From positions 62,001 to 126,000 of the IMG/VR virus record IMGVR_UViG_3300020202_000001: a stretch of 64,000 bases of DNA; one strand, written 5' to 3'. The notes under the pieces are model-generated. The model saw only the letters and a program-made list of their open reading frames with translations. It made no database searches and had not been told where the DNA came from. Positions 6,707 to 49,042 of the stretch are shown here, piece by piece (the first letter of the stretch is position 1; every line of letters begins with the position of its first letter). Made by a program: the position numbers and the translations under genes.

Positions 6707-6708
6707 AC

Positions 6709-7179: not shown

Positions 7180-7180
7180 C

Positions 7181-9671: not shown

Positions 9672-9908
9672 ATGTGTTTCGTGGACAAGGACGAGCCCGA
9701 GCGGAGCCGCTGGTTCTCGGACGTCGTCATCGTGCTGGCGTGTCTGCTCGTGTTGCCGTTTCTGGCCGTAGGAGGCAAGGATGCCCGGGACTCTGACGAC
9801 CCAAGTCGCCCTACCGAAGCCGCCGTCGTCCGCGACGGAGGAGCCGGACTACGACACGATCTGGAAGGACTGGAAGGCGGCCCCGCCCGACCCGGCGACG
9901 AACGCTAG
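9672..9908 (+). CDS. Possible small membrane protein (doubtful)
   Basis: One hydrophobic stretch (VVIVLACLLVLPFLAVGG) and an upstream GGAGG, but it overlaps the sigma gene by 128 nt. Confidence 0.25.
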   Translation: MCFVDKDEPERSRWFSDVVIVLACLLVLPFLAVGGKDARDSDDPSRPTEAAVVRDGGAGLRHDLEGLEGGPARPGDER

Positions 9909-10539
9909 GACGCTGCGGTCGCTCGACCCGCTGATCGACCGGGCCGCCAAGACCCACGTCGGCGACGTGAACCCGCTCGTGCGGAGCCGGGCTCGCAGCC
10001 TCGCGCTGCAGTCGCTGCAGACGTACGACCCGAACAAGGGCCGGTTCCAGAGCCACTTCTACAACCAGATGCAGGGGCTCAAGCGGTACAGCGCCCAGAC
10101 CGCGCAGGGCGTGCGGGTGCCGGAGCGGGTCGTGCTCGACCGGCGGGCGCTGGACATGGCCGAGGGCGAGCTGCGGGACCGCCTCGGCCGCGACCCGACC
10201 GACGACGAGCTGGCCGACCACAGCGGGTTCAACGTCCGCCGCATCCAGAAGGTCCGGGGGTACAGCCCGGCGATGAGCCAGGGGTACTTCTCGCAGCTCG
10301 GCGAGGACGGCGGCGGGTTCGAGCCGGGCGTGAACCGCAGCACGACGGCGGCGTGGGAGCAGCTGATCCTCGACGACCTGAACCCGGTCGACCGGAAGAT
10401 CTTCGACTACCACCGGCAGGGGATGTCGAACCAGCAGATCGCGGCGAAGCTGCGGCGGAGCGCGGGCCTCATCAGCCAGCGCAAGGCCGTGATCCAGAAG
10501 CTGCTGGACCAGGAGCAGGAACTCAGCCCGTTCCAGTGA
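9781..10539 (+). CDS. RNA polymerase sigma-70-family factor (SigB/F/FliA-like architecture)
   Basis: Region 2 YDPNKGRFQSHFYNQM, VRVPER, region 3 ELRDRLGRDPTDDELADHSG, region 4 HTH MSNQQIAAKLRRSAGLISQRK. Confidence 0.8.
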   Translation: MPGTLTTQVALPKPPSSATEEPDYDTIWKDWKAAPPDPATNARTLRSLDPLIDRAAKTHVGDVNPLVRSRARSLALQSLQTYDPNKGRFQSHFYNQMQGLKRYSAQTAQGVRVPERVVLDRRALDMAEGELRDRLGRDPTDDELADHSGFNVRRIQKVRGYSPAMSQGYFSQLGEDGGGFEPGVNRSTTAAWEQLILDDLNPVDRKIFDYHRQGMSNQQIAAKLRRSAGLISQRKAVIQKLLDQEQELSPFQ

Positions 10540-11789: not shown

Positions 11790-13442
11790 ATGCCGCTCGA
11801 AATCACCGAACTCGACGCCCTGGACCCCACGCTGGTCGAGCAGTCGCTCGCCCAGACGGCCCAGCGCGTGCAGGAGGCGAACCCGACCCTCGACCTGAAG
11901 CGGGGCGTGTTCCACGATCTGCTCGTCTACCTGCACGCGCTGCTCGACAGCCAGCTCCGGGGCGGGGTCATCAACCGCTACCTGTCGGCCCGGTCGCTGC
12001 TGGACATCCAGGCCGACCCGACGCTCGCGGACCCGCTGGTCGTCGAGCGGGTGCTGAGCAACTTCCGCCTCTCGCGGGGCGAGGGGGCGGCGGCGACCGG
12101 CGAGGTGACGATCGTCATCAACCGGCCGATCAGCGTGACGGTCGGCAGCGGGGCGGTGTTCGTCGCCAACGGCCGGCGGTTCAGCGCGAACTCCGCGTTC
12201 ACCGCCAAGCCCGAGGCGGCCCAGATCAACGGCCCGACCGACCGGCTGCTCACGCGGCTGAACGACGGGAACTACGCGTTCACGATCGACGTGACGGCGG
12301 CCGACGAGGGGACCGAGTCCCTGATCGCCAAGAACACGCTGGTCGTGCCGGTCGCCCAGCCGAACGGGTACGTCACCAGCTACGCGACCAGCGACTTCTC
12401 CGGCGGCCTGAACCCGGAGACGAACACCGAGCTGCTGGAGCGGCTGCAGCTCGGCGTCTCGTGCAAGGCCCCGAGCAACCGGCCGAACATGCAGGCCATG
12501 CTCCGCGACCAGGCGGAGTTCAGCCGCGTCGTCCACAGCTCGATCGTCGGGCACGGCGACGAGGAGATGCTCCGCGACCAGCACACGATCTTCCCGGTCA
12601 GCCTCGGCGGCCGGGCCGACTGGTACGTCCGCACGGTCGAGCGGGTCCAGCGGATGACGCTGAAGAAGACGGCGACGCTCGTGTCGGTCGGCGACGACGG
12701 CACGGGCGTGTGGGCGTTCGGCCTCACGCGGGACGACGCCCCCGGCTTCTACGAGGTCGCGTCCGTCCTGCGGCCCGAGGCGGAGAACGTCGCCGGCACG
12801 CTGCCGATCACGTCCGACGTGCGGGGCGTGGACCTGACCGGCGACGGGTTCGTCCCGGACGTCGAGACGGTGGCCGAGGGGGCGTACACGAGGTACCAGA
12901 CGGCCTCGGTCCGGTTCCACGACGTGGCGACCGACCACGGGGCGCTGACGCCCGGGGCGACGCGGGAGTACGACGTCACGGTCACCGCCCTGCCGCTCGT
13001 CGGCCTGATCCACGACTACGTCACCGACTTCGAGGTGCGGAGCTACGGGAGCGACCTGTTGGTCAAGGCCCCGATCCCGTGCTTCCTCAAGGTCCAGTTC
13101 CGCGTGGCGAAGAACCGCAAGCAGGCGGACCCCGACGTGCTGGCGATCGCCGACGCCGTCGCCCGCGCCGCCAACACGACCGGGTTCACCGGCCGGCTGT
13201 ACGCCGGGCACCTGCAGGACGTGATCGCCGGCTACCTGCAGGACGGGATGAGCGTCGGGTCGATCGACATGTTCGGCCGCATCCGCCACCCTGACGGGAC
13301 CAGCTCGTACGTCCGCGGCGACGAGGTGCTCGTGATCCCGTCCGTCGACGGGGCGATGGTCAGCCCCCGCACCGTGCAGTTCTTCCTGGACCCGGCCGAC
13401 GTCGAGATCCAGGTCAGCACCGAGATCCCCGTGCCCCAGTGA
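11790..13442 (+). CDS. Baseplate J-like (gp6-like) wedge protein
   Basis: 550 aa; GAAATGEVTIV..GSGAVFVANG, SDFSGGLNPETNTELLERL and related BplJ-type segments; follows gp25-like gene. Confidence 0.75.
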   Translation: MPLEITELDALDPTLVEQSLAQTAQRVQEANPTLDLKRGVFHDLLVYLHALLDSQLRGGVINRYLSARSLLDIQADPTLADPLVVERVLSNFRLSRGEGAAATGEVTIVINRPISVTVGSGAVFVANGRRFSANSAFTAKPEAAQINGPTDRLLTRLNDGNYAFTIDVTAADEGTESLIAKNTLVVPVAQPNGYVTSYATSDFSGGLNPETNTELLERLQLGVSCKAPSNRPNMQAMLRDQAEFSRVVHSSIVGHGDEEMLRDQHTIFPVSLGGRADWYVRTVERVQRMTLKKTATLVSVGDDGTGVWAFGLTRDDAPGFYEVASVLRPEAENVAGTLPITSDVRGVDLTGDGFVPDVETVAEGAYTRYQTASVRFHDVATDHGALTPGATREYDVTVTALPLVGLIHDYVTDFEVRSYGSDLLVKAPIPCFLKVQFRVAKNRKQADPDVLAIADAVARAANTTGFTGRLYAGHLQDVIAGYLQDGMSVGSIDMFGRIRHPDGTSSYVRGDEVLVIPSVDGAMVSPRTVQFFLDPADVEIQVSTEIPVPQ

Positions 13443-17854: not shown

Positions 17855-18808
17855 ATGCCGACCGCGATTTGGAACCTGGAGTGGCTGAACGCCAACGCCC
17901 AGCGGCGTTACCCGCTGACCGAGGACTCGTCCGGCCGGGACGCCAGCGGGAGCTTCGCGCTCCCCGCGTCGTTCCTGCTGGAGCTGGACATGCCGATCCA
18001 CCAGGGGCTGAACGTCACCCCGGCCCGGTTCTTCCTCCGCCAGCTCAGCGTCGACTCGGCCGGCTTCCTGCTCGTGATCGGCTACCAGCCGACCAGCGGC
18101 AGCGCGGTGAACGTGGCGACGGCCCTCGTGCCCCGGGGGACGCACCAGCCGGGCAACGTGTACGCCCTCGGCGGGATCAACTCGTACGCGGACACGGTGG
18201 GCAAGGTCGTCGTCGGCCGGCTCGACGAGATGGAGGAGCAGCCCTCGGGCCTCTTCCAGTTCTCGTTCGAGGACGCCCGGATCGAGCCCGACTGCGTCCG
18301 CCCGATCGTCCGGGGCGTCAGCAGCCTCTCGGTCGTCAGCGGCACGAGCGTCGGCCCCCGGATGTACGGGGACATCGAGCTGGTCGCCGGCGACAACATC
18401 CAGCTCGTGCCGATCGTCGCGACCGGCCAGAACCCGCAGATCCGCATCAGCGCGATCAAGGGCGAGGGGCTGGCCGAGGAGTGCGTGTGCATCGGCGACG
18501 AGGACGCCCCCTGCATCAAGCGGATCAACGGCATCCCGCCCACGGCGGACGGCAACTTCACGTTCCTCGGCAACGCCTGCCTCACGGTCGAGGGCGTGAA
18601 GAACGGGATCAAGCTGAACGACGTGTGCTCCGAGCCGTGCTGCGGGTGCGAGGAGCTGGAGGCGATCACCCGCCAGCTCGAAGCGTTCGGGTCCAAGGCC
18701 GCCACGCTGGAGGGGTTCGTGAACCGCCTGCAGTCCGAGGTGACGGCGATGGACATGGTCGTGCTCGGGAGCAAGACCGGCGACCGGGGCTGCGTGCAGT
18801 GCGGGTGA
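17855..18808 (+). CDS. Cys-rich virion protein, paralogue 1
   Basis: True start ATG 17855; N-terminal WLNANAQRRYPL; CIKRINGIPP..GNF; DVCSEPCCGCEEL followed by a coiled coil. Confidence 0.7.
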   Translation: MPTAIWNLEWLNANAQRRYPLTEDSSGRDASGSFALPASFLLELDMPIHQGLNVTPARFFLRQLSVDSAGFLLVIGYQPTSGSAVNVATALVPRGTHQPGNVYALGGINSYADTVGKVVVGRLDEMEEQPSGLFQFSFEDARIEPDCVRPIVRGVSSLSVVSGTSVGPRMYGDIELVAGDNIQLVPIVATGQNPQIRISAIKGEGLAEECVCIGDEDAPCIKRINGIPPTADGNFTFLGNACLTVEGVKNGIKLNDVCSEPCCGCEELEAITRQLEAFGSKAATLEGFVNRLQSEVTAMDMVVLGSKTGDRGCVQCG

Positions 18809-18812
18809 CGGC

Positions 18813-20297
18813 ATGGCGAACGACTTTCAAACCCTCGCGGTCAACCAGCTCGCGGCCACCGGCTACGGGGCGGACTACCCGTTCGCCAAGGCACCGCCCG
18901 AGTGGAAGTACATGTTCGGCGACCTGTGGTTCAGCTACCCGGACGACGCGTGCGAGCTGGAGCTGCCGCTCCGCATCGGCGCGATCTCCGACGCCCTGAT
19001 CCCGGGCAACCTGAACCTGGAGATCCGCGACGCCGCCGGCACGACCGTGTTCAACACCGCCGCGGCGACGCGGACGTCCAACGCCTGGGGCAAGAACCTC
19101 GTCACGTACAGCTACAAGCAGGGCGAGTTCAGCCTCCGCCTGACCCAGCGGCTCCAGCCGCCGCCGTGGGAGCCCGACCTGCAGTGGCCCGCCGGCGGCG
19201 TCCTCGGCGAGGAGGGCACGCTCGACGCCCGGACGTACCAGCGGCTCCCGAAGCGGGTCCGCTCGATCGTCGTCGGGCTCACGACGTTCACCGGCAGCGA
19301 CCTCCGGCTCGTCGAGGGCTACAACATGAGCCTGACCACGCCGCCCGTCGCCAACGCGGACGGCGGCCGCCGCGTCAGCCGGGTCATGCTCCGCGCCCGC
19401 CCCGGCGACGGCCTCGGGCGGCCGGACGGGTGCGACGACGCCGAGATCGCCATCCAGCGGATCAACACGGTCCCGCCGACCAAGGGCGGGGACTTCGTCG
19501 TCGACACCGAGGGGTGCTACCGCATCCAGCGGCCGGTCACGGTCACCGGCACGGCCCCCCGCACGGTCGCGGTCGCCGTGCCGGCGGCCCTGCAGATCTT
19601 CAACGACTGCGGCCCGTGCTGCCCGTGCGACGACTTCGTCCGCACCTACGAGGGCATCCGCCGGCTGTTCTACCGCTACCAGACGATGGGCGAGAAGGCG
19701 GAGGCGACCCGCGACACGTTCCTCGACAACATCGAGCGGTGGGAGCTGCAGCGGGCGTGCCGGGAGCTGCAGACGGCCAAGCTCGTGCTCCAGGCCGAGC
19801 GGGGCGGCATCCTGTTCGTCGGCGGCGTCCACTGCAACATGACCAAGTGCTGCTCGGTCCCGCTCCTGCTGCGGACCACGTTCGAGTATTTCCAGAACGG
19901 GTCGCCGGCCGGCGTCCAGCCGACAGAGCTGAAGTGCAAGGAGACCAAGCGGTCCGGCACGGACACGAACTACGACGAGGTCGACTACCAGCCCGTCCAG
20001 AACTGGCCCGTGATCGACCACCCGTTCGGGCTCGCCGACCCGATGGCCCAGAGCCGGTTCCGCACGCGGCTGAAGTTCCCGGCCGGCGGGGCCGACAGCG
20101 TGCGGGTGACGTTCAGCGTCCACATGCCCGACATCTTCGAGGCGGTGTCCGGCGACCGGTGCGCGCTGCCCGTCGTCGAGCCGCCGGCCGAGGTGGCCGC
20201 GATCTGGGCGAGCAAGCCGCCCCCGTTCCCGGCCCGGGCGATCGTCCAGAAAGTGTCGCCGGTGTCGATGACCGCCGGGTGCGGAGCCTGCCCATGA
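18813..20297 (+). CDS. Cys-rich virion protein, paralogue 2
   Basis: YGADYPF near the N-terminus; IQRINTVPP..GDF; NDCGPCCPCDDF followed by a coiled coil. Confidence 0.7.
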   Translation: MANDFQTLAVNQLAATGYGADYPFAKAPPEWKYMFGDLWFSYPDDACELELPLRIGAISDALIPGNLNLEIRDAAGTTVFNTAAATRTSNAWGKNLVTYSYKQGEFSLRLTQRLQPPPWEPDLQWPAGGVLGEEGTLDARTYQRLPKRVRSIVVGLTTFTGSDLRLVEGYNMSLTTPPVANADGGRRVSRVMLRARPGDGLGRPDGCDDAEIAIQRINTVPPTKGGDFVVDTEGCYRIQRPVTVTGTAPRTVAVAVPAALQIFNDCGPCCPCDDFVRTYEGIRRLFYRYQTMGEKAEATRDTFLDNIERWELQRACRELQTAKLVLQAERGGILFVGGVHCNMTKCCSVPLLLRTTFEYFQNGSPAGVQPTELKCKETKRSGTDTNYDEVDYQPVQNWPVIDHPFGLADPMAQSRFRTRLKFPAGGADSVRVTFSVHMPDIFEAVSGDRCALPVVEPPAEVAAIWASKPPPFPARAIVQKVSPVSMTAGCGACP

Positions 20298-22408
20298 GCG
20301 TACGCAACCTCCACTGGTACAACGCCAACGCCACCCGCGGCTACCCGCTGGCCGACCAGGCCACGAGCGTCTCGGCCGGCGGCGTCGCCCTCCCGCCCGG
20401 CGTCCTCGTCGACCTGAACCTGCGGTACCCCCGCACGCTCGGGCCGTACGTCTTCGTCTCGGCCGTGGCCGTGACGCCGACGCTGGTCAGCGTGACGATC
20501 CAGGCCGCCACGGACCCGGACGACCCGAGCACGTACGCCCCGGTCGCCGCCTTCTCCGCCCGCCGCGAGACGGTCGAGGAGCGGCGGCAGTACGCCCTGC
20601 AGCCTCAGTACCCCGGCGTCGGCGGGTGGGTCGTGTTCGGCTCCGGGATCGACGAGCCCTACACCGGCCGGTTCGACGCCCGGGGCGGCCTGCTCGCGCC
20701 GCGAGCCGCACGCGGGTACCGCCCGCTGCCGGTGACGAGCCTCGGGCTGCTGCACGACGCGACCCCGCTGACCGGGATCGTGAACGTCCGGGGCGAGCAG
20801 CCGGTCGAGGTGTCGCGGGGCGAGCGGGAGATCGCCGGCATCCTGCGGGACGTGGTCGTGATCGGGCTCGTGCAGCCGACCGCCGACGCCACGCTGCTGA
20901 CCGAGCAGCAGAGCGTGTTCGAGCGGTTCGCCGGCCCGTGCGGCAAGCGGCCGGAGAGCGGCAACTGCGGCGACCGGGCTCCGGTCGAGTTCATCAACGC
21001 CGTCCCGCCGAACTGCGAGGGGAAGATCTTCATCGAGTTCCGCGGGTGCGCGAGGATCGCCCGGGTGACCGGGGAGTGCGGCATCGTCATCGACTGCGGC
21101 CTCGGGCTGATCGACGCGTGCGTGACCGACCAGCTCCCCGAGCCGACCGGCAAGCTGGAGAACGAGTACCCCGACGAGTGCATCGAGAGCGAGAGCGAGG
21201 ACCCGGTCGTGTCCGAGAGCGTCGGCCCCCAGCCGCCGTACATCTCCGAGGAGTCGGACTCGGCCCCGGTGCCCGGCGTCTACCCGTACGTCGACACGTT
21301 CGACGACGGCACGGCGTCCGGGTGGGAGACCGTCGCCGGCACGTTCTCGTTCGTCACGAACGACAGCCCCAGCCAGCCGGCGGACGGGGTGAAGTTCCTC
21401 GGGCAGGACAACGCCACGCAGGGCAACTGGGTCGGGACGTACGGGGCGGACGGCAACGTCATCGCCACGCACACGAACAGCCCGCCGGCCGGCACGACCG
21501 TGAGCGTGACCGGGAACTTCGTCTTCAACGGCTGGCCGGACGACGCCGGCGACCCCCGGCTCCTGCAGTTCGGCGTCGGCCGCGTCGCGGACGTCTGGTA
21601 CACCACGGGCGGCCCCGGCACGGCCTTCGACGTCAGCGTCACCGTGGCGGCCGGGCAGAAGAAGGCCGCGTCGCTCTACTTCTGCGACTACGACGCGTGC
21701 GCGACGTTCACGCCCCGGTCGCTCACCGTCGAGCTGCGGGACGCGGCGACCAACGCCGTCCTCGACACCCGGAGCGTCGCGAACTACCAGAACGGCGTGT
21801 GGCTGCGGTGGCAGATCTCCGGGGCGGTCAAGTTCCGCGTCATCTGCACCGCCGCGTGCAACGCCGTGATGAACGGCATCTTCTTCGACCCGGCCGTCCG
21901 CCGGAGCCGGAGCACGGCGGGCGGGGCGTCGGACCGGAACGTGACGCTATACCGCGGGTTCGAGTCGGCGGCGGTCGGCAAGAAGTACCGGACGGCCGTG
22001 CGGCTGCGGAGCGGCGGGTCGCGGCGGAACGCCGGCCTGGTCCTGAACTACCGGCCCGCACCGGACTTCAGCGGCCGGTCCGTCTACCACGTCGCCGAGA
22101 TCGACTACGACTCCCAGCAGTTCCGCATCAGCTACTTCAACGGGGCGAAGCTGCTGCCGACCGCCGCCGTCGCCCAGCTGACGAACCTGCAGCTCGACCG
22201 CTGGTACCAGCTCGACGTGGAGACGGCGACGTCGGGCGGCTTCGTGGAGATCTCCGCGACGCTGACGTCGCTGGAGGGCCTCGGAGCCGGCCTGATGGCG
22301 TCGCTGTCGCTGGAGACGTCCCAGTACACCCCGGACACGGGCAAGGTCGGGTTCCACGCGGACCGGGCGGTGTCCGAGTTCTCGTACCTCAAAATCGAAG
22401 AGGCGTAA
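20294..22408 (+). CDS. Cys-rich virion protein, paralogue 3, with C-terminal ConA/LamG-like beta-sandwich and an inserted domain
   Basis: True start ATG 20294 (ATGA overlap); WYNANATRGYPL; FINAVPPNCEG; C-terminal DTFDDGTASGW...NAGLVLNY...RWYQLDVE...GKVGF. Confidence 0.7.
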   Translation: MSVRNLHWYNANATRGYPLADQATSVSAGGVALPPGVLVDLNLRYPRTLGPYVFVSAVAVTPTLVSVTIQAATDPDDPSTYAPVAAFSARRETVEERRQYALQPQYPGVGGWVVFGSGIDEPYTGRFDARGGLLAPRAARGYRPLPVTSLGLLHDATPLTGIVNVRGEQPVEVSRGEREIAGILRDVVVIGLVQPTADATLLTEQQSVFERFAGPCGKRPESGNCGDRAPVEFINAVPPNCEGKIFIEFRGCARIARVTGECGIVIDCGLGLIDACVTDQLPEPTGKLENEYPDECIESESEDPVVSESVGPQPPYISEESDSAPVPGVYPYVDTFDDGTASGWETVAGTFSFVTNDSPSQPADGVKFLGQDNATQGNWVGTYGADGNVIATHTNSPPAGTTVSVTGNFVFNGWPDDAGDPRLLQFGVGRVADVWYTTGGPGTAFDVSVTVAAGQKKAASLYFCDYDACATFTPRSLTVELRDAATNAVLDTRSVANYQNGVWLRWQISGAVKFRVICTAACNAVMNGIFFDPAVRRSRSTAGGASDRNVTLYRGFESAAVGKKYRTAVRLRSGGSRRNAGLVLNYRPAPDFSGRSVYHVAEIDYDSQQFRISYFNGAKLLPTAAVAQLTNLQLDRWYQLDVETATSGGFVEISATLTSLEGLGAGLMASLSLETSQYTPDTGKVGFHADRAVSEFSYLKIEEA

Positions 22409-22409
22409 C

Positions 22410-23237
22410 GTGGCAGAACGCATCCAGTTCCCCCAGTGGCGGGCCGAGCACGAGCCGACGCGGTACCCGTTCGCCTCGGAGGCCACGCTGACCAACGGCG
22501 AGCAGTTCCTGCCCGCCGGCACGCTGCTGGACGCCTGCCTGTACCCGATCGGCGGCGGGGCGGACCTGTACCTGTCGGCCGTCGTCGTCGACCACGACCG
22601 GGTCACGGTCTTCTTCGGCGACGCGGCGGACGCCCGCCTGTGCTCCGGGTCGTTCGACCTGGTCTCGCCGCCGGACACGGTCCCGCTGGTCGACGCGTTC
22701 GGGCGGTCGGCCGGGCTGCTGGTCAGCGAGTCGTCCCGGCTCGGGCTGTTCGGGGCGTGGGGCCTCGGGACGTTCGCGTTCGAGGCCGAGCAGACGCCGC
22801 TGGCCGCGACCGTGTGCTTCCCACAGCCGGCGGTCGGCGTGCGGGGCATCCGCGTCCCGGACGGCACGGTCCTGACCGGCGACGTGTGGTTCGTCGGCGA
22901 GGACGGCGTCGTGCTCCGCAAGGAGACGGTCGAGGTCCCGCCCGAGAGGTGCGGCCCGGCCAGGGCGTACACGGTGATCCGCGTCGACGTCGTGGGCGAC
23001 CCGCTGTTCCGCCGCCGGCTGTGCACGCCGACCGACCTGTTCGAGACGCCGCGGTACGTCCAGTCGATCGTATTCAGCGACGGCCGCCAGGTGGTCGAGT
23101 GCGGCCCCGGCCCGTACGGCGACGTGAAGGTCACGGTGAACAACGACCTCGCGGCCGACACGGTGCTCCGCGTCCACCCGACCGAGGCGGGGACGAAGAT
23201 CGGCGTGGTCGGGTCGCTGATGAAGAGCGTGCGGTGA
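22410..23237 (+). CDS. Virion protein, paralogue 4
   Basis: QWRAEHEPTRYPF N-terminus; tight operon packing. Confidence 0.65.
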   Translation: MAERIQFPQWRAEHEPTRYPFASEATLTNGEQFLPAGTLLDACLYPIGGGADLYLSAVVVDHDRVTVFFGDAADARLCSGSFDLVSPPDTVPLVDAFGRSAGLLVSESSRLGLFGAWGLGTFAFEAEQTPLAATVCFPQPAVGVRGIRVPDGTVLTGDVWFVGEDGVVLRKETVEVPPERCGPARAYTVIRVDVVGDPLFRRRLCTPTDLFETPRYVQSIVFSDGRQVVECGPGPYGDVKVTVNNDLAADTVLRVHPTEAGTKIGVVGSLMKSVR

Positions 23238-23259: not shown

Positions 23260-24696
23260 ATGGCCAAGCCAGGCTTCTACAACGACAACCGCAACCGGGC
23301 CTTCCCGTTCGTGAAGGGCACGGTCGGGGACCTGTTGGCCGCCGCGGACACGGTTGCCGCCCTGCCGGCCGCCACGGTCGTCGACGCCGGGTTCGTCCTC
23401 GGCCTGCGGTCCGGGTTCATCGACGGCGTCCACAAGATCCGGCTGGAGAAGGTCCGCCGCGTCGGCGACGACGTGTACTTCGACTTCGCCTCCGACGCGC
23501 CGGCGCTGGTCGGCAAGCCGCTCACGTTCCACCGGTCGGCCGCGTCGGCCGAGGAGTACGAGACCGAGCACGTCGAGGTGCTGGACGAGGGGTACGTGAT
23601 CGTCAGCGCGGTGTCCCAGTCGGTCAGCGAGGGCGACCCGACGCCGGTCAACTGCGGGTGCATCCAGCTCGGCAAGAGCGGCAGCTTCGTCCCGAGCTGC
23701 ACGGGCACGATGCGGCTGTTCCTGAACGACGACAACTTCGCGGACAACAAGGGGTCGTTCACCGTCACGATCAACGGCGAGACGTTCGTCGTCCCGTCGA
23801 CCGAGCCGAACGGCGTGCCCGGCCCCGACGTCATCGCCGGCCAGACGTACGCCTACACGGCCAGCGGGCTCGTGGAGTTCGACGAGCGGCAGGGCGTGAA
23901 GCGGATGTGCGACCCGGACGGGCCGACGAGCGAGTCGATCAAGTACGGCATCCCCGGCGAGCACCCGTGCCCCGGGCTGGTCGAGTGGTCGCTGGTCGGG
24001 AAGCTGACCGGCAGCCCGGTCGTGACCCCGCCGCCGCCCACGACCACGCCGTCCGAGACGTGCGAGGGCGAGCCCCTGTGGGGCGGGTACCTCGTGACCG
24101 GCCGGCTGGCGGACCTCCTGACCGTGCTCCCGGGCGACGGGGAGGTGACCGGGGCGGTCGGGGCGGGCCTGGTCGAGCCCGCGCTGGTCCAGAACGACGC
24201 CAACTCGTACATCGGCAGCGTGAACGTCGGCAACGCGGACCGCACGCGGGTGGACGCTCCCGGCGACTGCCCGCCGTTGACCTGGCCCCACGACACCGGC
24301 GAAGATGTGATCTTCGTCAACGCGAGCTGCCTGCGGGGCGACATCCGGTTCAAGCCCGGGTACAACGCGATCGTCCGGCAGGAGTCGGACACGAACCTGC
24401 TGATCTTCGGTGCCGAGGTCGGGGCCGGCGAGGGCCAGCCGTGCGACCAGGTGCCGCTGTTCGACGGGGAGGTGCCGCCGGCCGGGAGCGCCCTGCTGGA
24501 GGGCGGCCCCCGGTGCAACGAGGTGATCCGCTCGATCAACGGCGTGGGCGGCAAGTTCGCCGCGCTGCTGGGCGGGACGGGCGTCACCGTGACGCAGCTG
24601 CCGGCGTCGAACAAGGTCGTCGTCGACGTGAACATGGGCGGGCTTGCGGCGTGCTTCGCGTCGAGCGAGTTCTCGGAAGTGTCGGAAACGCTGTAG
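23260..24696 (+). CDS. Virion protein, paralogue 5, with a lectin-like insert
   Basis: [13 protein letters not shown]-terminus; [20 protein letters not shown]; [14 protein letters not shown]. Confidence 0.65.
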
Positions 24697-24745
24697 TACC
24701 ACCGGCGGCCAAGGACGGCCGTCGCACCAGACACGGAGGTCTGTC

Positions 24746-27700
24746 ATGCCGGTCCCCTGCACGGGCTCCACGCCCGGCGTCTTCACGCCGAGCGGCACGG
24801 TCCACACGATCGAGACCGACATCACGAAGGGCACCCCCGTGTACTTCGCCGGGGGCATGTCGTTCCCCGCCGGCCGGTACCGGATCAAGTACCTCCGCGG
24901 CTGCCTGAAGTTCCGCCACGACTTCGACTGGGGCGTCGACACGACGTTCAAGGTCAGCGTCGACCCCGGCAGCGGGGCCACGGACATCGGCCAGGCCCCG
25001 GGCGTCGAGAACCGGCTGCCGAAGGTGAACCACCAGGGCGACGGGTCCAACCCGAACGCCAAGATCCGCGGCAAGGGCTGGCCGACGAAGGGCGAGGCCG
25101 AGGCGGCCAACCAGAACGCCCCGCCGTTCGAGTTCAACCACGGCGGCGGCAAGATCGGCGTGCGGCTGGCCGACAGCCCGTACTCGGACAACATCAGCGG
25201 CAAGCCGAGCCCGAAGTACACGCTCCAGCTCCTGGAGCCGTGCACGGTCCCGATCCCGCCCGGCGTCCCGCCCGAGACGCCCGAGGTCACGATCGTCACC
25301 TACCCGCCCACGCCGGAGGCGTTCCCCCGCGCCCGCGTGAAGTGCGGCGTGCCCGAGGTGCCGGGCATCCCCCAGCTGCCGATCATCAACGTCTGCATCG
25401 TGCCGCCCGCCCCGCAGCCGATCCTGGCGTGCCCGGAGCCGGTGGTGAACATCCCGCCGCCCGAGCAGGCGATCCCGTGCCCGCAGATCCAGGTCGGGGC
25501 GTCGTTCGAGGTGAAGGTCGGGCCGCCGTCCGTCACGCTGACCACGACCTCGACCAACACGACCGACGCGTGCGGCGACGCGACGTGCGGCACGCAGATG
25601 CACTTCGCGTTCCAGCTGCCGCCGACGCCGCAGATCCCCTGCCCGCAGATCACCGTGCAGTCCCAGACGACGGTGACGCCGGGCAACCCCGACGCCACGG
25701 TCACGGTGGAGACGCTCCCGGGCGGCCCGCCGGACCCGTGCCGGTTCAAGTTCAACTTCGCGTTCCAGCTCCCCCCGCCGCCGCCGTGCCCGCAGATCGA
25801 GGCGGAGTACACGTCGACGACGACCGAGGGCGACCCGTCCGCGAGCGTGACGGTCACGAAGACCGCGGACGACCCGTGCCGCTACCTGTTCAACTTCGCG
25901 TTCCAGATGCCGCCCGCCCCGCAGTGCCCGGAGATCGAGGCCGAGGCCACGACCACGGTCACCGAGGGCAGCCCGTCCGCGAGCGTCGAGGTCACGAAGG
26001 AGAGCGATGACCCGTGTAAGTACAAGTTCGCGTTCGCGTTCCAACTTCCACCGGCCCCTCAAGTTCCCTGCCCGCAAATCGAGGCTACATCTACCACGAC
26101 GGTCACCGAGGGCAGCCCCTCCGCCAGCGTCGAGGTGACCAAGGAGTCGGACAACCCGTGCTCCTACAAGTTCTCGTTCGCGTTCCAGCTTCCGCCCGCC
26201 CCGCAGGCACCGCAGTGCCCGACGATCACGGGCAGCGCGTCGGCGACCAGCACCGAGGGCGAGGCCAGCGCCAGCCTCGACGTGCAGAAGACGGGCGACG
26301 ACCCCTGCGCGTACAGCTTCACGTTCGCGTTCCAGGTCCCCAAGGGGCCGCAGGGGCCGTACGGCCCGACCGGGCCGTGCCCCCAGGTGACGGCGTCGGC
26401 GTCGGCGACCACCACGGAGGGCGACGCAGCCAGCGCCTCCGTCGAGGTCAGCGAGCAGTCCGGCTGCCACAAGGTGTTCACGTTCGCGTTCCAGCTCCCC
26501 AAGGGGCCGCAGGGTCCGCAGGGGCCGACCGGCCCGCAGGGGCCGCGCGGGTACCAGGGTCCGCAGGGTCCGACCGGCCCGCAGGGCAGCACCGGGCCGC
26601 AGGGGCCGACCGGCCCGCAAGGCATGACGGGGGCACAGGGTCCTCAGGGGCGTACCGGCCCGCAGGGTCCGACCGGCCCGCAGGGGGCGGACGGCGTCTG
26701 CCCGCAGTGCCCGCCCGGCGCTCAGGGTCCGACCGGGCCACAGGGTCCGACCGGCCCGATGGGTGCTCAGGGTGCCGTGGGCGCTCAAGGTGCCCCCGGC
26801 CCGCAGGGTGCCACGGGGGCGACCGGGGCGACCGGCCCGCAAGGCCCGACCGGGCCGACCGGCGCGACCGGTGCGACCGGCGACACGCCCGACGTCGGCT
26901 TCGCAACCACCGCCAACGCACTGCCGCACGGCTCGCCGCCGACCGCAGACGTCATCCCGTTCAGCGGCGGGCCGCAGAACCCGGTCTTCCTCATCACGTT
27001 CGGCATCCCCGAAGGTGCCCAAGGCGCGACCGGCCCCCAAGGCCCGACCGGCCCGCAAGGCACGACCGGGGCGACAGGGGCCACCGGCGACACGGGACCG
27101 CAGGGTCCGACCGGCCCGACCGGTGCGACCGGCGACGTCGGTCCCCAAGGGCCGACCGGCCCGCAAGGAGCTACCGGCGCGACGGGTGCTACGGGCGAAG
27201 TTGGGCCACAGGGTCCGACCGGCGCTACGGGTGCGACCGGTGATGTCGGTCCGCAGGGTCCGACCGGCCCGCAGGGAGCCACTGGCGCGACGGGTGCCAC
27301 GGGCGAGATCGGACCTCAAGGCTCGACGGGTGCCACCGGCCCGCAAGGCCCCACGGGTCCGACCGGCGCGACGGGTGCCACGCCCGAGATGGCCCTGACC
27401 TCGACGGCGAACACGCTGCCGGCCGGGTCGGCGGCGACGGCCACCGTCTCGCAGACGGCCGGCGGGCCGCAGAACCCGACGTTCGAGTTCACCTTCGGCA
27501 TCCCCGAGGGTGCCGCCGGGGCGACGGGCTCCCAAGGTTCCACCGGCCCGCAAGGTCCCACGGGTCCGACCGGCGGCACGGGCGACATGGGTCCGCAGGG
27601 ACCGACCGGTGCCACCGGCGCTCAAGGGGCGACGGGGCCACAGGGTCCGACCGGCCCGCAGGGTGCGACCGGGGCGACGGGTTCGATGGGTCCGCAGGGT

Positions 27701-29158
27701 CCGACCGGGCCGACCGGGCCGACCGGCGCGAACGGTGCTGACGGCGCTGTCGGACCGCAAGGCCCGACCGGCCCGCAAGGAGCGACCGGCGCAACGGGCG
27801 AGACGGGGCCAGCCGGCCCGGCTTCGGTCGGCGAGACCGGCCCGCAAGGCCCGGCAGGCGCGACGGGTGCCACCGGCGCTCAGGGCAGCGTGGGTGCAAC
27901 GGGTCCGCAGGGACCGACCGGTGCCACCGGCTCGACGGGCTCGCAAGGGCCGATCGGGCCGACCGGGTTCCAGGGCGGCACCGGCGCTTCCGGCCCGCAA
28001 GGCCCCACCGGTGCCACCGGTGCCACGGGTGCCCAAGGCCAGAACGGCTCGACCGGGCCGCAGGGTCCGACCGGAGCAACGGGCGCGACCGGGCTCCAGG
28101 GTCCGACCGGCCCGAGCGGGCAACAGGGCTCGCAGGGTTACCAGGGTCCGACCGGTCCGGTCGGCCCGCAGGGCAGCACGGGTGCCACCGGCGCGACCGG
28201 TGCCCAAGGCCAGAACGGCTCGACAGGTCCGCAAGGCCCCACCGGCCCGAGCGGCCAGCAGGGATCGCAAGGCGTCCAAGGTCCGGCGGGTCCGACCGGG
28301 CCGCAGGGTGCCACCGGTGCGACCGGCGCGACCGGACCGCAGGGTTCGCCGGGTGCCACCGGCCCACAGGGTCCGACCGGGGCGACCGGCCAGACGGGTC
28401 CCCAAGGCCCGATGGGTCCCACCGGTTACCAGGGCGGCATGGGGGCGACGGGTGCCACCGGCGCGCAGGGTCCGATGGGCTACACCGGAAGCACCGGCGC
28501 TCAGGGTCCGGTGGGGCCGAGCGGTGCTCAGGGTCCGATGGGCTACACCGGCAGCACCGGGGCTCAAGGCCCGATGGGGCCGAGCGGCTACAACGGCAGC
28601 GACGGGCCGCAGGGTCCGATGGGGCCGAGCGGCCAGCAAGGGCCGCAGGGCCAGCAGGGCATGATCGGGCCGCAGGGTCCGACCGGCTCGACCGGCAGCA
28701 ACGGCGCGGACGGCCCGCAGGGGCCGAGCGGTCCGACCGGCCCGCAGGGCGGCAAGACGGCGATCGTCGCGATCGACGGCAAGTACCGCGGCCTGTTCTG
28801 CACGGAAGGCCCGGAGGTCTGGTTCCAGGACTTCGTGGACGTCGAGGTCGAGATCGACGAGTGCGGGTGCGGCACGACGCGGCACCCGATCGACCCGCTG
28901 TTCATCAAGGCGTGCGAGCCGGGCTCGATCCGCGTCGCGTCCCACGCCGTCGACGCGCTCGGGCTGTCGTGCTCGTTCCTCGACGGCGGCGTGATCGTCG
29001 TCGCGGTGAACGAGGCGGTCGGTGCCAAGCGGGCGACGGCCGTCGTCGGCCTGGTCGGCGTCCGCAAGGGCTTCGCCAAGGTCCGGTTCCCCGAGTACAG
29101 CGAGGCCCAGTTCAAGGCGAACACCGCCTTCTACCAGTCGGCGTACACCCATGGCTAA
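24746..29158 (+). CDS. Collagen-like fibre protein (1470 aa)
   Basis: Start ATG 24746 with GGAGG SD; N-terminal globular domain, seven Cys-paired repeats, long Gly-X-Y region, C-terminal [14 protein letters not shown] domain. Confidence 0.85.
25472..26500 (+). repeat. Seven ~45-aa repeats CPxI...EGxxSASVxV...DPCxYxFxFAFQxP
   Basis: Counted directly in the translation. Confidence 0.85.
26504..28750 (+). repeat. Gly-X-Y collagen repeats (GPQ, GPT, GAT dominant), about 215-220 triplets with two ~44-aa interruptions
   Basis: Seen directly in the translation. Confidence 0.95.
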
Positions 29159-31157
29159 GCGTCGCCTCATCCTCGACCACCGGTTCGCGCTGGGCGACAC
29201 CGTCCTGATGACCGCCCTCGTGCGGGACATCCAGGCGGCGTACCCCGGCTACTTCGAGATCCTCGTCGACACGCACTGCCGGGAGGTGTGGACCAACAAC
29301 CCGCACGCCCGGCTGCTGCGCGGCGACCAGACCTCGACGATGCCGACGACGCGGGTGGACATCTCCTACGCCAACGGCATCCACGCCGCCGGCCGGGGGC
29401 AGCGGGTCCACATGCTGTCGTGGTTCCACCGCGACTTCGCGACGAAGACGGGGATGGAGCTGGAGCCGCTGCTGCCCAAGGGCGACCTCCACCTGACGGC
29501 CGAGGAGAGCAAGCCGCTGGTCGACGGCCGGTACTGGCTGGTGCTCGCCGGCGGCAAGCTGGACATCACCTGCAAGTGGTGGCTGCCCGAGCGGTGGCAG
29601 GAGGTCGTCGACAAGCTGGCGGCCGAGGGGATCTCGTGCGTCCAGGCGGGGGCGACGTTCCGCGAGCACCGCCACCCGAGCCTGTCGAACGTCCTGAACC
29701 TGCTCGGGCAGTACCCGGACGCCCGGCAGTTCATGAACCTCGTCATGCACGCCGAGGGCGTCATGTGCCCGGTCACCTCGGCCATGCACATCGCCGCCTG
29801 CTACGACAAGCCGTGCGTCGTCCTCTCGGGCGGCCGCGAGGAGCCGTGGTGGGAGAGCTACACGAACGCGTACAAGGCGTTCGGCCCGCGGTGCGCCCCG
29901 GTCGCGACCGAGCACCGCTTCCTTCACACGATGGGCCTGCTAGACTGCTGCAAGAAGAAGGGCTGCTGGAAGCACCGCACGGTGCCGCTGGGCAACCAGG
30001 ACCGTTGGGACGGCCCCGAGCGTCGGTGCCAGCTCCCGGTGATCCTCCCGCACGCCAGCACGCCGAAGTGCCTGGAGATGATCTCCAGCGACCACGTTGT
30101 CGAGGCAGTCATGAGCTACTACGAGAACGGGGAGATCCCGCCGATCGGCCAGGCGAAGGGCTTCACGCGAAAGCCGCTGCCGCCGATCGCAGTGAACACG
30201 GAAGACGAGTTGGACCGGGCGGTCGACACTGACCTACCGGTGCGGTCGTTCAAGATCCCGCACGTCCCGGGCCTGAGCCCCGCCGCGGTGCGGACGCAGG
30301 TGGCGGCCGAGCGGGAGTTCTACAACGCCGCCCTCGGCGAGCCGTTCGACCCGCAGATCCAAAAACCGGTTTTGAGAACCATCCCCCAGCCGTCGATGAT
30401 CGACCACCCGCTGATCGGCGGGAAGCTCACGGTCTGCGTGCTGTGCTTCGGCGACCACACCGAGCTGGCCAAGAGCTGCATCGGCTCGATCCTCGACACG
30501 CTGCCGGCGGAGAACCTCGACCTCCGCATCGGGCTGAACGCCGTGTCCCAGGCGACCATGGACTACGTCATGGGCCTCGACGTGCCGATCGGGCTGACGA
30601 TCCACGCCGAGAACGCCAAGAAGTACCCGGCCATGCGGGAGATGTTCAACGACGGCGCGAACCCGATCACGACGAAGTACGTCGTCTGGTTCGACGACGA
30701 CGCGAAGGTCGTGGACCCGTCGATGTGGTCGCAGCTCTGCCAGACGATCGTGGCGAACCACCCGCTCGGCAGCCGGCTCTACGGCCCGACGTTCATCCAC
30801 GACCTCCAGATGTACGCCAAGGGCGGCCGCGACCCGCTCGCGTGGTTCCGGTCCGCCCCGTGGTTCCGGGGGCGGGGGCTGAAGGTCCGCGGCCGCGGGC
30901 AGGAGGCCCCGAACGGCACGGTGATCGACTTCGCCGCCGGCTGGTTCTGGGCGATCGCGACCGAGACGATCAAGGCCGCCAACGTCCCGTGCCCCCGGCT
31001 GAACCACAACGGCGGCGACATCACGATCGGCGAGCAGGTGCACCAGGCCGGCTACAAGGTGAAGGGCTTCAACAAGGACAAGGCCCTGGTCTGGTGCCCC
31101 ACGAAGGAGGGCGGCGGCCGGCGGGGCTACTCGGAGGCGTTCCCGTGGGCGTCGTGA
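29151..31157 (+). CDS. Two-domain glycosyltransferase: GT9 (heptosyltransferase-like, GT-B) plus GT2-like (GT-A)
   Basis: Start ATG 29151; [20 protein letters not shown] and [18 protein letters not shown] (GT9-like); LTVCVLCF...SCIGSIL...YVVWFDDD (GT-A DxD). Confidence 0.75.
30358..30377. promoter_or_regulatory. Dispersed palindrome, copy 5 (TCCAAAAACCGGTTTTGAGA), intragenic
   Basis: Identical to copies 1, 7 and 8; sits in the inter-domain linker of the glycosyltransferase (IQKPVLR). Confidence 0.85.
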
Positions 31158-31171
31158 AGGACGGGCCGCCG

Positions 31172-31498
31172 ATGGCCCTCGACCACAACCTCCTGTACCA
31201 GATGGTGACCGACCCGGCGTTCTTCCGCCGGGTGCCGGTCCTGTTCTTCATGAAGGAGCAGGCGGAGGCGTGCGCGGCGGCGTTCGCGGCCGGCGAGTGC
31301 GGCGGGTGCGGGGCGACCGGGGCCATGGGGCCGGCGATGGCCACGTTCGTCCGCACGCTGATCTCGACCCAGCGGGACGCCCCGGAGATGCTCGACCCGC
31401 TGGTCGCGTACATCGCGGAGCGACGCGGCTACCGCCCGAGGCCCGTCCGCGTGTACTATAGAGTGGGCACGGATGCCCCGCAGCGAATCGAGTTCTGA
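31172..31498 (+). CDS. Small CxxC protein (108 aa)
   Basis: Start ATG 31172; ECGGCG; similar to 31968..32276. Confidence 0.6.
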   Translation: MALDHNLLYQMVTDPAFFRRVPVLFFMKEQAEACAAAFAAGECGGCGATGAMGPAMATFVRTLISTQRDAPEMLDPLVAYIAERRGYRPRPVRVYYRVGTDAPQRIEF

Positions 31499-31515: not shown

Positions 31516-31947
31516 ATGGCCAGGTACATCAAGCTGACCCGCTCCGAGATCAAAGAGGTCAACCACTACCACATCCGGGGCTTCCGCATCCGCGTCGAGG
31601 CGAGCGACGCCGTGGGCATGCCGAACGAGGTGTTCGTGTACGCCCGGCACCCGCCCAACCCGCACACCGGCGAGGTCGTCGACGAGTTCCTGACCGTCGC
31701 GAGCTTCCCCGACCTGGCCGAGTACCCGGCGAACGACCCGGACCCGACCAAGGCGTTCCCGTTCCTGCGCAAGAGCTTCATCGAGTTGGACGTCCGCTCG
31801 ATGAAGGACGTCGAGAACATCTGGCGGCTCGTCGTCGAGCTGGTGTGCTTCCTGCGGGCAGCCCTGAACCGGGCCGACCAGCTGGTCGTCGCCGAGACGG
31901 TCGACTGCGGCCAGCCGCCCGAGTCCGAGTCCAGCGCGTCCGTCTAA
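31516..31947 (+). CDS. Hypothetical protein (143 aa)
   Basis: GC3-rich ORF with GGGAGG upstream. Confidence 0.6.
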   Translation: MARYIKLTRSEIKEVNHYHIRGFRIRVEASDAVGMPNEVFVYARHPPNPHTGEVVDEFLTVASFPDLAEYPANDPDPTKAFPFLRKSFIELDVRSMKDVENIWRLVVELVCFLRAALNRADQLVVAETVDCGQPPESESSASV

Positions 31948-34344: not shown

Positions 34345-34800
34345 ATGACCATGACCGCCCGCGAGCCGAACCTCCAGAACGTCCCCGTCCCGCTCACCGA
34401 CGCCCAACGGGTCGAGAGCGGGCGGATTCGCCTGATGTTCGGCGACCCCAAGCCGGTGCTGCTGACGGCAGACTACTCGGCCGTCGAGCTGCGGCTGCTC
34501 GCCCACGCGTCCGTCCACGGCGTCGACGCCCTCGACCCGCAGGCCGCCAAGGCCCGCGACGACGAGGACGAGGACGAGGAGGACGACGAGGACGATGACG
34601 ACGGCGACCTCCTCGACGACGACGAGGAGGACGAGGACGAGGAGGACGACGAAGACGACGACCTCGACGACGACGAGGATGACGACCTCGACGACGACGA
34701 GGACGACGATCTCGATGACGACGACGAGGACGACGACGACTTCGACGACGACGAAGACGACGAGGACGACGAAGACGACCTCGACGATGACGACGAGTAG
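34345..34800 (+). CDS. Micro-protein: family-A DNA polymerase fragment (PNLQNVP through ADYSAVELRLLAHAS) fused to an 80-aa Asp/Glu tail
   Basis: Matches the PolA motifs PNLQNIP and ADYSQIELRxxAHLS in the correct order and spacing; own SD; intact stop. Confidence 0.75.
   Translation: MTMTAREPNLQNVPVPLTDAQRVESGRIRLMFGDPKPVLLTADYSAVELRLLAHASVHGVDALDPQAAKARDDEDEDEEDDEDDDDGDLLDDDEEDEDEEDDEDDDLDDDEDDDLDDDEDDDLDDDDEDDDDFDDDEDDEDDEDDLDDDDE
34558..34797 (+). repeat. Asp/Glu low-complexity tract (GAC/GAG/GAT/GAA repeats)
   Basis: 80 codons, almost all acidic, punctuated by L, F and G. Confidence 0.95.
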
Positions 34801-47057: not shown

Positions 47058-48209
47058 TTGGCGACGAAGACCATGCCCGAAACCGGGCTCCCCGTGCTGT
47101 ACAGCCGGCGGAGCGACAAGAAGATCCAGACCTGGCGCATCGAGGTCGACCCCGCCGGCCGGTTCCGCGTCCACAGCGGGATCGAGGACGGCAAGACCGT
47201 CACCAGCGAGTGGACCCAGTGCGTCGGGAAGAACCCTGGCAAGAAGAACGCGACGACGCCCCAGCAGCAGGCGGAGCTGGAGGCCCGCGCCCTGTGGAAG
47301 AAGAAGCAGGACGAGGGCTACAAGGTGAACGTCGCCGACGTGGACGTCCAGACGGCCTTCTGGCCGATGCTGGCCGAGCACTACGACGACTTCCCCGAGC
47401 TGGTGAAGGCCGCGTTCGCGGCGGGCGAGACCGTGATGTGCCAGCCGAAGCTGGACGGCATGCGGTGCGTGACCCGCCTCGACGGGATGTGGAGCCGCAA
47501 CGGCAAGCCGGTGCCGTCCGCCCCGCACGTCTACGAGGCCCTGTCCAAGCAGCTCCGGCACTACGCCCAGGTGACGTTCGACGGGGAGCTGTACGCGGAC
47601 AAGTTCGCGGACGACTTCAACAAGATCATCTCGCTGGCGAAGAAGGGCAAGCCGAAGCCGGCCGACCTGGCCGAGTCGGCCGAGCACCTGCAGTACCACG
47701 TCTACGACGCCCACTCGGCGGCCCTGCCCGACCGGCCGTTCTCGAAGCGGCACGCGTTCCTCCGCGACGTGGTCGAGCTGGTGAACCACCCCGCGATCGT
47801 GCTCGTCGAGACGGTCGTCGCCCAGGACATGGAGCACATCGAGACGCTCTTCGGGCAGTGGCGGGCGAAGGGGTACGAGGGGGCGATGATCCGCCTCGAC
47901 CGGCCGTACGAGAACAAGCGGTCCCGGAGCCTGCTGAAGTTCAAGCAGTTCGTCGAGGAGGAGTTCAAGGTCGTCGACGTGATCGAGGGCGTCGGCAACA
48001 AGTCCGGGATGGCGGGCGCGCTGGAGTTCAAGACCGCGGCGGGGCGTAAGTTCACCGCCGCGATCATGGGCAACCGCGCGTTCTTCCGAAAGCTCCTCGC
48101 CGACAAGAAGAACGTGAAGGGCAAGGTCGCCACGGTGCAGTTCCAGAACTACACCCCGGACGGGAGCCCCCGGTTCCCGTGCGTCAAGGCGATCCGCGAC
48201 TACGAGTAG
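47058..48209 (+). CDS. lig: ATP-dependent DNA ligase with an N-terminal WGR-like domain
   Basis: Motif I QPKLDGMR, motif III FDGELY, YHVYDA, motif IV GYEGAMIR, motif V LLKFK, OB-fold TVQFQNYTPDGSPRFP. Confidence 0.9.
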   Translation: MATKTMPETGLPVLYSRRSDKKIQTWRIEVDPAGRFRVHSGIEDGKTVTSEWTQCVGKNPGKKNATTPQQQAELEARALWKKKQDEGYKVNVADVDVQTAFWPMLAEHYDDFPELVKAAFAAGETVMCQPKLDGMRCVTRLDGMWSRNGKPVPSAPHVYEALSKQLRHYAQVTFDGELYADKFADDFNKIISLAKKGKPKPADLAESAEHLQYHVYDAHSAALPDRPFSKRHAFLRDVVELVNHPAIVLVETVVAQDMEHIETLFGQWRAKGYEGAMIRLDRPYENKRSRSLLKFKQFVEEEFKVVDVIEGVGNKSGMAGALEFKTAAGRKFTAAIMGNRAFFRKLLADKKNVKGKVATVQFQNYTPDGSPRFPCVKAIRDYE

Positions 48210-48216
48210 GGACGCC

Positions 48217-49039: not shown

Positions 49040-49042
49040 CAC

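Follow-up and report, generated by a model that had tools for sequence, protein, structure and literature searches.

We analysed 64,000 nucleotides of phage DNA (the window), which are bases 62001–126000 of a single 224,418-bp virus record, IMG/VR IMGVR_UViG_3300020202_000001; the record has direct terminal repeats and is rated complete, and its source is a soil phage belonging to an uncultured jumbo-phage clade. Within the window, a gene encoding a collagen-like fibre is followed by a gene encoding a bifunctional enzyme, in which a GT-B domain of the type of glycosyltransferase family 9 (GT9) is fused to a GT-A domain resembling family 2 (GT2). Comparison with relatives shows that, across the clade, the place of this enzyme is immediately 3′ of a hypervariable fibre slot, with or without a collagen gene beside it. 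Virion glycosylation is the single most likely role of the enzyme. We tentatively propose a glycosyltransferase that is expressed late, acts in two steps and decorates Ser/Thr-rich fibre proteins of the virion without being specific to collagen, collagen as the specific acceptor being considerably less probable.

A word search for homologues of the enzyme returned 338 proteins, and the best 120 of these 338 are nearly all full-length fusions at 43–66% identity, many of them encoded on contigs 200–240 kb long. The family has more than 300 metagenomic members on phage contigs of 180–240 kb, with more than 100 enzyme-bearing loci in IMG/VR. The order of genes around it is conserved as A605-B317-C494-D709-E275-F478, a variable slot of about 1–9 kb, the enzyme, and then H143-I104 ... 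K244 ... AAA. Fibres in the slot vary in whether they have collagen, the Cys-bearing repeat module described below and the C-terminal domain of the fibre studied here. Because selection for the enzyme had to be avoided, we re-sampled the clade through E275. Fibre slot and then enzyme were found in 36 of the 41 non-redundant relatives, a position kept over a G+C (GC) range of 0.40–0.70. No co-variation of collagen and enzyme was seen among these 41 loci (Fisher p 0.65), which divide into 20 with both, 16 with the enzyme and no collagen, two with collagen and no enzyme, and three with neither. Beside its enzyme, the closest IMG/VR relative has a fibre of 294 residues with six triplets. In a complete 226-kb relative the collagen fibre ends in the C-terminal domain of the fibre studied here, yet a search of its whole record returned zero enzyme homologues, as did a search of a 93%-complete relative; as a positive control, the enzyme was found in four of five other records. 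The distribution over the 41 loci, together with the enzyme-free collagen relative, therefore indicates that collagen and enzyme are not a coupled pair, although linkage of the enzyme to the fibre slot is usual. The first-pass annotation of this DNA had proposed a coupled collagen/enzyme glycosylation system and co-occurrence of both genes across phages as a check on it; with the two genes unlinked in relatives that proposal fails, and what looked like a tidy gene pair in one genome is shown by comparison not to be a coupled system.

The fibre gene (24746–29158, + strand) encodes 1470 residues and is the sole collagen gene in the 224-kb genome. It is identified by its translation, by a plot of GC at third codon positions (GC3) by frame, by a Pfam Collagen match (E 2.4e-90) and by matches to PHROG tail-fibre families, the last of these driven by the collagen repeats. 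A Shine–Dalgarno-like GGAGG (24735–24739, + strand), read from the sequence, lies 6 nt before its ATG. The protein consists of an N-terminal domain, Cys-containing Ser/Thr-rich repeats, an interrupted collagen region and a C-terminal beta-sandwich knob. The N-terminal domain (residues 1–244, 24746–25477), which is followed by a Pro-rich linker, is variable among relatives and has a homologue in only one of them (L164). Language-model searches for look-alikes of the N- and C-terminal domains returned nothing usable; a lead from the N-terminal domain to PA-IL-type lectins was faint (score 0.89). Residues 245–599 (25478–26542) form seven repeats of 46–55 residues with two Cys each, whose consensus runs from CPQI through a Ser/Thr-rich strand and a G-initial segment to DPC-x-Y-x-F-x-FAFQLPP, FAFQLPP ending each repeat. 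Ser and Thr make up 22% of these repeats and 20–22% of the fibre overall, compared with a window median of 10%. Many relatives also have the repeat module in their fibre slot, whether or not collagen is present.

The collagen-like region (residues 534–1334, 26345–28747) contains 220 Gly-X-Y triplets, or 660 residues, when triplets are counted in runs of at least four; the nine runs hold 4, 22, 19, 41, 7, 27, 16, 50 and 34 triplets. This agrees with the earlier count of 215–220 triplets and 655 residues, as does the dominance then noted of GPT, GAT and GPQ: the commonest triplets are GPQ (46), GAT (44) and GPT (37), jointly 58% of the 220. Pro (105) and Ala (66) together fill 171 of the X positions and Thr (101) and Gln (73) are the main residues at Y, giving a GXT-rich (GPT) region of the BclA type, and the collagen part contains no Lys. 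Pfam Collagen (PF01391) matches the fibre in 13 stretches, and uninterrupted Gly-X-Y runs are long, reaching 50 triplets. Two non-collagen inserts of 42 residues, at residues 715–756 (26888–27013, ending ...FLITFGIPE) and 880–921 (27383–27508, ending ...FEFTFGIPE), look like degenerate copies of the fibre's repeat unit. Because these two inserts and five short breaks interrupt the helix, the fibre would be jointed; the residue count behind the previously estimated length of ~190 nm holds, and the length itself becomes an upper bound.

Directly after the last triplet comes the C-terminal domain (136 residues, 1335–1470; 28748–29155), which is kept after collagen in about 10 relatives and is modelled by AlphaFold2 (AF2) as a beta-sandwich plus a terminal helix with a predicted local distance difference test (pLDDT) score of 86. 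Its best solved matches, at Z no higher than 6.9, are the distal domains of the cyanophage Pam1 tailspike and the R2 pyocin fibre, and H-type lectins. BclA carries a C1q/TNF-like domain in this position, a candidate that we rejected here because fold searches with the AF2 model gave no C1q/TNF match. Compared with known phage collagen-like tail fibres (PHROG 5073, 6320, 819, 1806 and others), the protein has the Gly-X-Y shaft in common and a knob resembling tail-fibre tips, but it is unusually long at 220 triplets and has the seven Cys-bearing Ser/Thr-rich repeats, units of which apparently also interrupt the collagen. A 1548-codon open frame runs antisense to the gene (24584–29230, − strand), and further long frames overlap. 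These were rejected as genes, since the GC3 plot backs the + frame only, and are shadow frames resulting from GC-rich triplet periodicity.

The enzyme gene (29151–31157, + strand; 668 residues) begins inside the fibre gene, in the 8-nt overlap that had been described at first pass: the sequence ATGGCTAA at 29151–29158 (+ strand) contains the enzyme's ATG (29151) and the fibre's TAA (29156–29158). The enzyme gene has no ribosome-binding site of its own in front of it. Overlaps of a few nucleotides are ordinary in this tightly packed genome. An AF2 model based on 28 homologues (pLDDT 84) has two domains joined by a disordered linker (residues 334–411, 30150–30383) that is modelled with low confidence (pLDDT 31–48), is variable in length and falls in a gappy part of the alignment. 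The fusion of a GT9-like with a GT2-like domain read from the sequence at first pass was borne out, by Pfam for the first domain and by predicted fold for the second. Pfam GT2 families score below their cut-offs of 27 bits on the C-terminal part (PF13712, 16.7 bits, E 0.006; PF13641, 15.8 bits, E 0.014), and it is the structural model that makes this domain (residues 412–668, 30384–31154) clearly GT-A/GT2-like. Its fold matches 6p61 at Z 17.5 and BcsA, HAS, ppGalNAc-T and TarS/TarP at Z 15–17; the DxD motif of a GT-A fold is present as D515-D516-D517, invariant in 28 sequences, and H619-N620-G621..D623 is likewise invariant. A stand-alone paralogue of this domain, 36% identical, is encoded at genome positions 181040–181690.

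The N-terminal domain (residues 1–333, 29151–30149) has a GT-B fold and matches PF01075, the GT9 family of Pfam, at 26.2–27.6 bits against a gathering score of 22. Its closest folds are a Veillonella GT9 protein (3tov, Z 23.8), WaaF (21.2), TibC (20.7, with a root-mean-square deviation (rmsd) of 3.2 over 269 aligned residues) and WaaC (~19). Across 81 phage and bacterial sequences G15-D16 is conserved at 96–97% and K136, R229 and E230 at 100%; C266, C272, C293 and C307, near the end of the C-lobe, are invariant, as are several His. The domain belongs to an uncharacterised family, the four invariant Cys of which recall the iron finger of TibC. Judging from conservation and predicted folds, both domains appear to carry the motifs expected of an active enzyme. 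The likeness to WaaC, WaaF and WaaQ (CAZy GT9) extends to the common Pfam family and to the fold (Z 19–21), while the phage family falls far below the NCBIfam equivalog cut-offs and has in addition the Cys cluster and the invariant His; to our knowledge, WaaC and WaaF have not been described as having a Cys4 finger.

Several lines of evidence lead us to favour virion glycosylation. The enzyme gene adjoins and overlaps the fibre gene by 8 nt, lacks a separate ribosome-binding site and holds a fixed place after the slot; the fibre has an unusually high Ser/Thr content, with 101 GXT triplets; and there are TibC-like features, a subclade of homologues linked to extracellular contractile injection systems (eCIS), and the precedent of SgtA and BclA3 (PMC7157674). 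In the mechanism that we envisage, a distal fibre of the tail/baseplate module and a soluble two-step glycosyltransferase would be translated from the same late message. The enzyme would draw on host nucleotide sugars in the infected cell, the GT9 domain possibly with ADP-heptose as its donor. One domain would put a first sugar on hydroxyl groups of Ser/Thr in the virion's fibre proteins; the second would extend the glycan, which further GT2 enzymes of the phage could lengthen. Collagen would not be the acceptor per se; candidates among the proteins of the fibre slot would be this fibre's Thr-rich collagen and its Ser/Thr-rich repeats. Phage glycosyltransferases are usually filed, without evidence, as DNA- or LPS-modifying (LPS, lipopolysaccharide), and here a conserved two-domain enzyme sits after host-range fibres. 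If it does glycosylate virion fibres, virion glycosylation would extend beyond mycobacteriophages to large soil and freshwater phages; there would be a second protein-directed branch in family GT9, with a bearing on fibre protease resistance or host binding.

The nearest precedent for the gene arrangement is in Clostridioides difficile, where SgtA, a GT-A enzyme encoded beside the gene for the GPT-collagen protein BclA3, adds O-linked N-acetylglucosamine to triplet Thr (PMC7157674). Both cases place a GPT-rich collagen-like protein beside a gene for a GT-A-type glycosyltransferase. BclA3, like BclA of Bacillus anthracis, is however a Firmicutes spore-surface protein rather than a phage fibre, SgtA is a single GT-A domain rather than a GT9 + GT-A fusion, and a dedicated pair of the SgtA-BclA3 type is not what the phages have, the pairing not being kept in relatives. 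Mycobacteriophages have their own glycosyltransferases next to capsid or tail genes, pointing to decoration of virion proteins, and we know of no GT9 domain or fusion reported in that setting. Their virion glycosylation is mentioned in PMC11256854. The phage studied here likewise has a glycosyltransferase placed among structural genes, and differs from them in host phylum and in enzyme families. Mimivirus combines collagen-like fibres with L230, a hydroxylase/glucosyltransferase, through hydroxylysine chemistry. It too is a virus encoding a collagen-like protein plus a glycosyltransferase, but the Lys-free phage collagen is unlike the hydroxylysine route (giant-virus glycans are reviewed in PMC9614988).

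For the GT9 domain the closest functional precedent is TibC, a protein O-heptosyltransferase of GT9 fold with an iron finger formed by Cys339/342/358/370; in the cytoplasm, bacterial autotransporter heptosyltransferases (BAHTs; TibC/AAH) modify Ser residues of a repetitive protein (PMC4358343). The phage enzyme resembles TibC in having a GT9-type GT-B domain with four invariant C-lobe Cys, and differs from TibC/AAH in its fused GT-A domain and in sequence, with identity of only 13–17%. TibC/AAH are encoded beside their autotransporter substrate and the phage enzyme beside a collagen fibre, with no autotransporter family matches among the flanking genes scanned. A bolder version of the proposal, which we consider improbable as a whole, is that these enzymes are a new phage-borne TibC-like class, in which a Cys4-finger GT9 domain heptosylates Ser/Thr-rich tail fibres, the GT-A domain extends the glycan, and the same GT9 subfamily decorates eCIS fibres. 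If true, it would provide the first example of a heptosylated virion and likewise of a glycosylated eCIS. Our literature searches found no prior description of a GT9/GT-A fusion or of a glycosylated eCIS, and we know of no report of glycosylated eCIS particles.

Beyond phages, about 486 genome loci encode a domain like the GT9-type N-terminal domain at 36–48% identity, mostly in Verrucomicrobiota, Planctomycetota, Eremiobacterota and Acidobacteriota. In bacteria it often occurs in fusions with other transferase or with methyltransferase domains, and none of its gene neighbours are conserved across phyla. Joining this GT-B domain to a second transferase is recurrent, given independent bacterial fusions in two loci: in Verrucomicrobium sp. 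BvORR034 (L122, 7995–11546) the GT9-like domain is fused to Mannosyl_trans3 in a protein of 1183 residues, and in L092 (7998–9782) to a distant GT-A domain, at 28% identity, in one of 594 residues. In six genomes (L124, Paraburkholderia phymatum, and L132, L109, L158, L106 and L118) a stand-alone GT9-like gene is found inside eCIS loci. It lies 3–21 kb from the genome's only gp19-type tube gene and just after large DUF6519/beta-helix proteins; its other neighbours encode a GT9-methyltransferase fusion and proteins with eCIS core domains. Two further apparent neighbours of tube genes (L145 and L126) were rejected as coordinate coincidences on other contigs. The DUF6519 and eCIS proteins show no sequence similarity to proteins of the phage fibre module, and eCIS particles contain no DNA. 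The culturable P. phymatum homologue makes the acceptor of the family directly testable. In the quick version of our tree the phage enzymes form a clade, sister to seven rows from Planctomycetota; three of these (L084, L086 and L090, all Planctomycetota bins) appear to be other mobile elements or phages, because the genes lie beside those for DNA polymerase A and a primase-helicase (DUF3987/DUF3854), and the elements are without sequence relation to this phage.

A number of observations weigh against virion glycosylation. Besides the lack of co-variation with collagen and the enzyme-free collagen relative, they include the strong conservation of the enzyme (43–66% identity) next to a hypervariable fibre slot, which better fits a conserved acceptor. 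The likeness to TibC is incomplete: the Cys spacing is CX5CX20CX13C in the phage enzyme and CX2CX15CX11C in TibC, and the N-terminal beta-barrel of TibC (residues 1–97) is absent, residue 1 of the phage model aligning to TibC residue 93 so that the protein begins at the first Rossmann strand. The six eCIS-linked genes form one subclade in the quick version of the tree; six independent associations were therefore rejected in favour of one event. The DNA polymerase A and primase-helicase neighbours of the three Planctomycetota rows count in the same direction, and the phage gene itself borders a block with a DNA polymerase A fragment and an AAA ATPase.

A conserved acceptor is what would be expected if the enzyme instead added sugars, in the course of infection, to the LPS core of the host or to some other conserved glycan on its surface, which is the chief alternative and one that we consider less likely than fibre glycosylation, though worth serious attention. 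Masking of the receptor would keep progeny from being lost on debris and would exclude rival phages, and in the eCIS homologues it would protect the producer from its own particles. The explanation suits each of the three settings in which the family occurs (phage, other mobile elements and eCIS). The LPS-core heptosyltransferases are the best-known members of GT9, WaaF and WaaC are among the top structural matches (Z 19–21), and phage glycosyltransferases in fibre regions are commonly interpreted in this way (PMC7029224). Envelope remodelling is nevertheless poorly fitted by the LPS heptosyltransferase equivalogs of NCBIfam, which score about 15 bits against cut-offs of 134–467: the enzyme reaches 15.4 bits against 467 for RfaQ, and a bacterial GT9-like homologue 16.6 bits against 134.6 for heptosyltransferase II. 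The bacterial homologues also lack a conserved LPS-gene neighbourhood, coupling to a late structural gene would be odd for an exclusion function, and a Cys4 finger, such as the four invariant Cys may form here, is not known from WaaC or WaaF.

The replication-type block bordering the gene, and the polymerase and primase genes beside the Planctomycetota relatives, would instead suit an enzyme that glycosylates modified phage bases to evade restriction. Phage GT-A and GT-B enzymes are known to put diverse sugars, including heptose, on 5-hydroxymethylcytosine (bioRxiv 10.1101/2023.12.21.572611), and the GT-A enzymes concerned have a DDD motif and resemble TarP, as does the C-terminal domain here. 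We nonetheless regard a DNA target as very unlikely. Neither this genome nor any of six other enzyme-bearing relatives yielded a hydroxymethylase of the thymidylate-synthase family, which speaks against it, and the only hydroxymethylase match among the nine genomes searched came from an enzyme-free relative. There was no Tet/JBP match either, in a search that had no positive control. The DNA-directed GT-B enzymes described so far resemble T4 beta-GT and not GT9, and the eCIS-linked homologues cannot act on packaged DNA.

The phage genome contains four further Pfam GT2 matches, one of them below the cut-off; counted over all types, there are at least five further genes of glycosyltransferase type (genome positions 342–1055, 47758–49041 and 181007–181924, and a run at 202195–204800), with a sub-threshold GT2 match at 6313–7200 as a sixth. 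The three-gene run consists of a GT2 gene (202195–203016), a TOD1/MUCI70-like gene and a weak GT1-like gene. Related phages have between zero and seven GT2 matches, one relative having none. In some relatives the gene immediately 5′ of the fused enzyme is an orthologue of the GT2 gene at 47758–49041; this suggests a pathway of several steps, and we count it in favour of virion glycosylation. Neither of the nucleotide-sugar families PF01370 (epimerase/dehydratase) and PF00483 (nucleotidyltransferase) was found in the phage genome, and sugar donors would therefore come from the host. The further glycosyltransferase-type genes raise the question of whether the phage builds a free, lipid-linked or otherwise non-virion glycan by a pathway of several enzymes, with adjacency to the fibre being mere gene order. 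The number of glycosyltransferase-type genes, their clustering and their variation among relatives are consistent with this, as are the frequent transferase and methyltransferase fusions of the bacterial homologues, which are of a kind found in polymerases, and the GT-B + GT-A layout, which resembles bifunctional polymerases such as EXT1/EXT2 (with poor rmsd). We think it unlikely all the same, given that the position of the enzyme after the fibre slot persists over the whole GC range of the clade and that no transporter, flippase or lipid-carrier gene was seen among the neighbours scanned, although these were not searched for systematically.

The genome has a GC content of ~0.70, and all credible genes are on the + strand. 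Identical DNA is present in soil metagenome runs. Among deposited phage genomes, megablast with 20 kb of the window gave no DNA-level match, and tblastn of the fused enzyme against 50,697 of them gave zero relatives. Of about 40 neighbouring proteins scanned against PHROG and Pfam, most had no match; those that could be named were a baseplate J/gp6-like protein, an AAA ATPase, a DNA polymerase A fragment and a sigma-factor-like protein. The first of these, a wedge protein at 11790–13442 (+ strand; phrog_6, E 2.4e-12; PF04865, 26.9 bits), is the only family-level anchor that identifies the block as part of a tail module. No Pfam sheath or tube family gave a match in the phage genome, and a contractile tail is therefore not established. 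A Gemmataceae bin that contains a related phage contig is a mere hint of the host, for which Planctomycetota are a weak lead.

Upstream of the fibre lie conserved genes on the + strand, B317 (17855–18808), C494 (18813–20297), D709 (20279–22408), E275 (22410–23237) and F478 (23260–24696), which are syntenic in 15–31 related loci and are presumed to encode baseplate-periphery or fibre proteins. The N-termini of B317, D709 and E275 have in common a paralogous module of about 50–80 residues with a W-x-N...R-YP-L/F motif (jackhmmer E 1e-17 to 1e-31), the pattern expected if several fibres dock on one baseplate site. By eye, the N-terminus of F478 resembles this module, with no statistical link. F478, directly upstream of the fibre, also has a Pro/Thr-rich linker at residues ~265–280, possibly another candidate site for O-glycosylation and one in a conserved part of the module.

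On the other side of the enzyme, H143 (31516–31947, + strand; 143 residues) is found 3′ of it in almost every relative, and it is retained in relatives that lack the enzyme. The two genes are 357 nt apart, and the gap contains only a weak hairpin and a doubtful 134-codon open reading frame (ORF; 31094–31498) that overlaps the end of the enzyme gene and has a homologue in none of the related loci. A scan for terminators and promoters performed no better than chance (six found, 7.4 expected), and we therefore did not use the hairpin (31214–31238) as evidence. Farther downstream, in an ORF of 151 residues (34345–34800), residues 1–56 contain a DNA polymerase A motif (PF00476, 38.7 bits) and the remaining ~95 are nearly pure Asp/Glu; it may be a split or remnant polymerase gene, since we saw no polymerase A of full length in its vicinity. 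Immediately 5′ of the baseplate genes, a protein of 252 residues (9781–10539) matches a PHROG family of RNA-polymerase sigma factors (E 1.5e-6).

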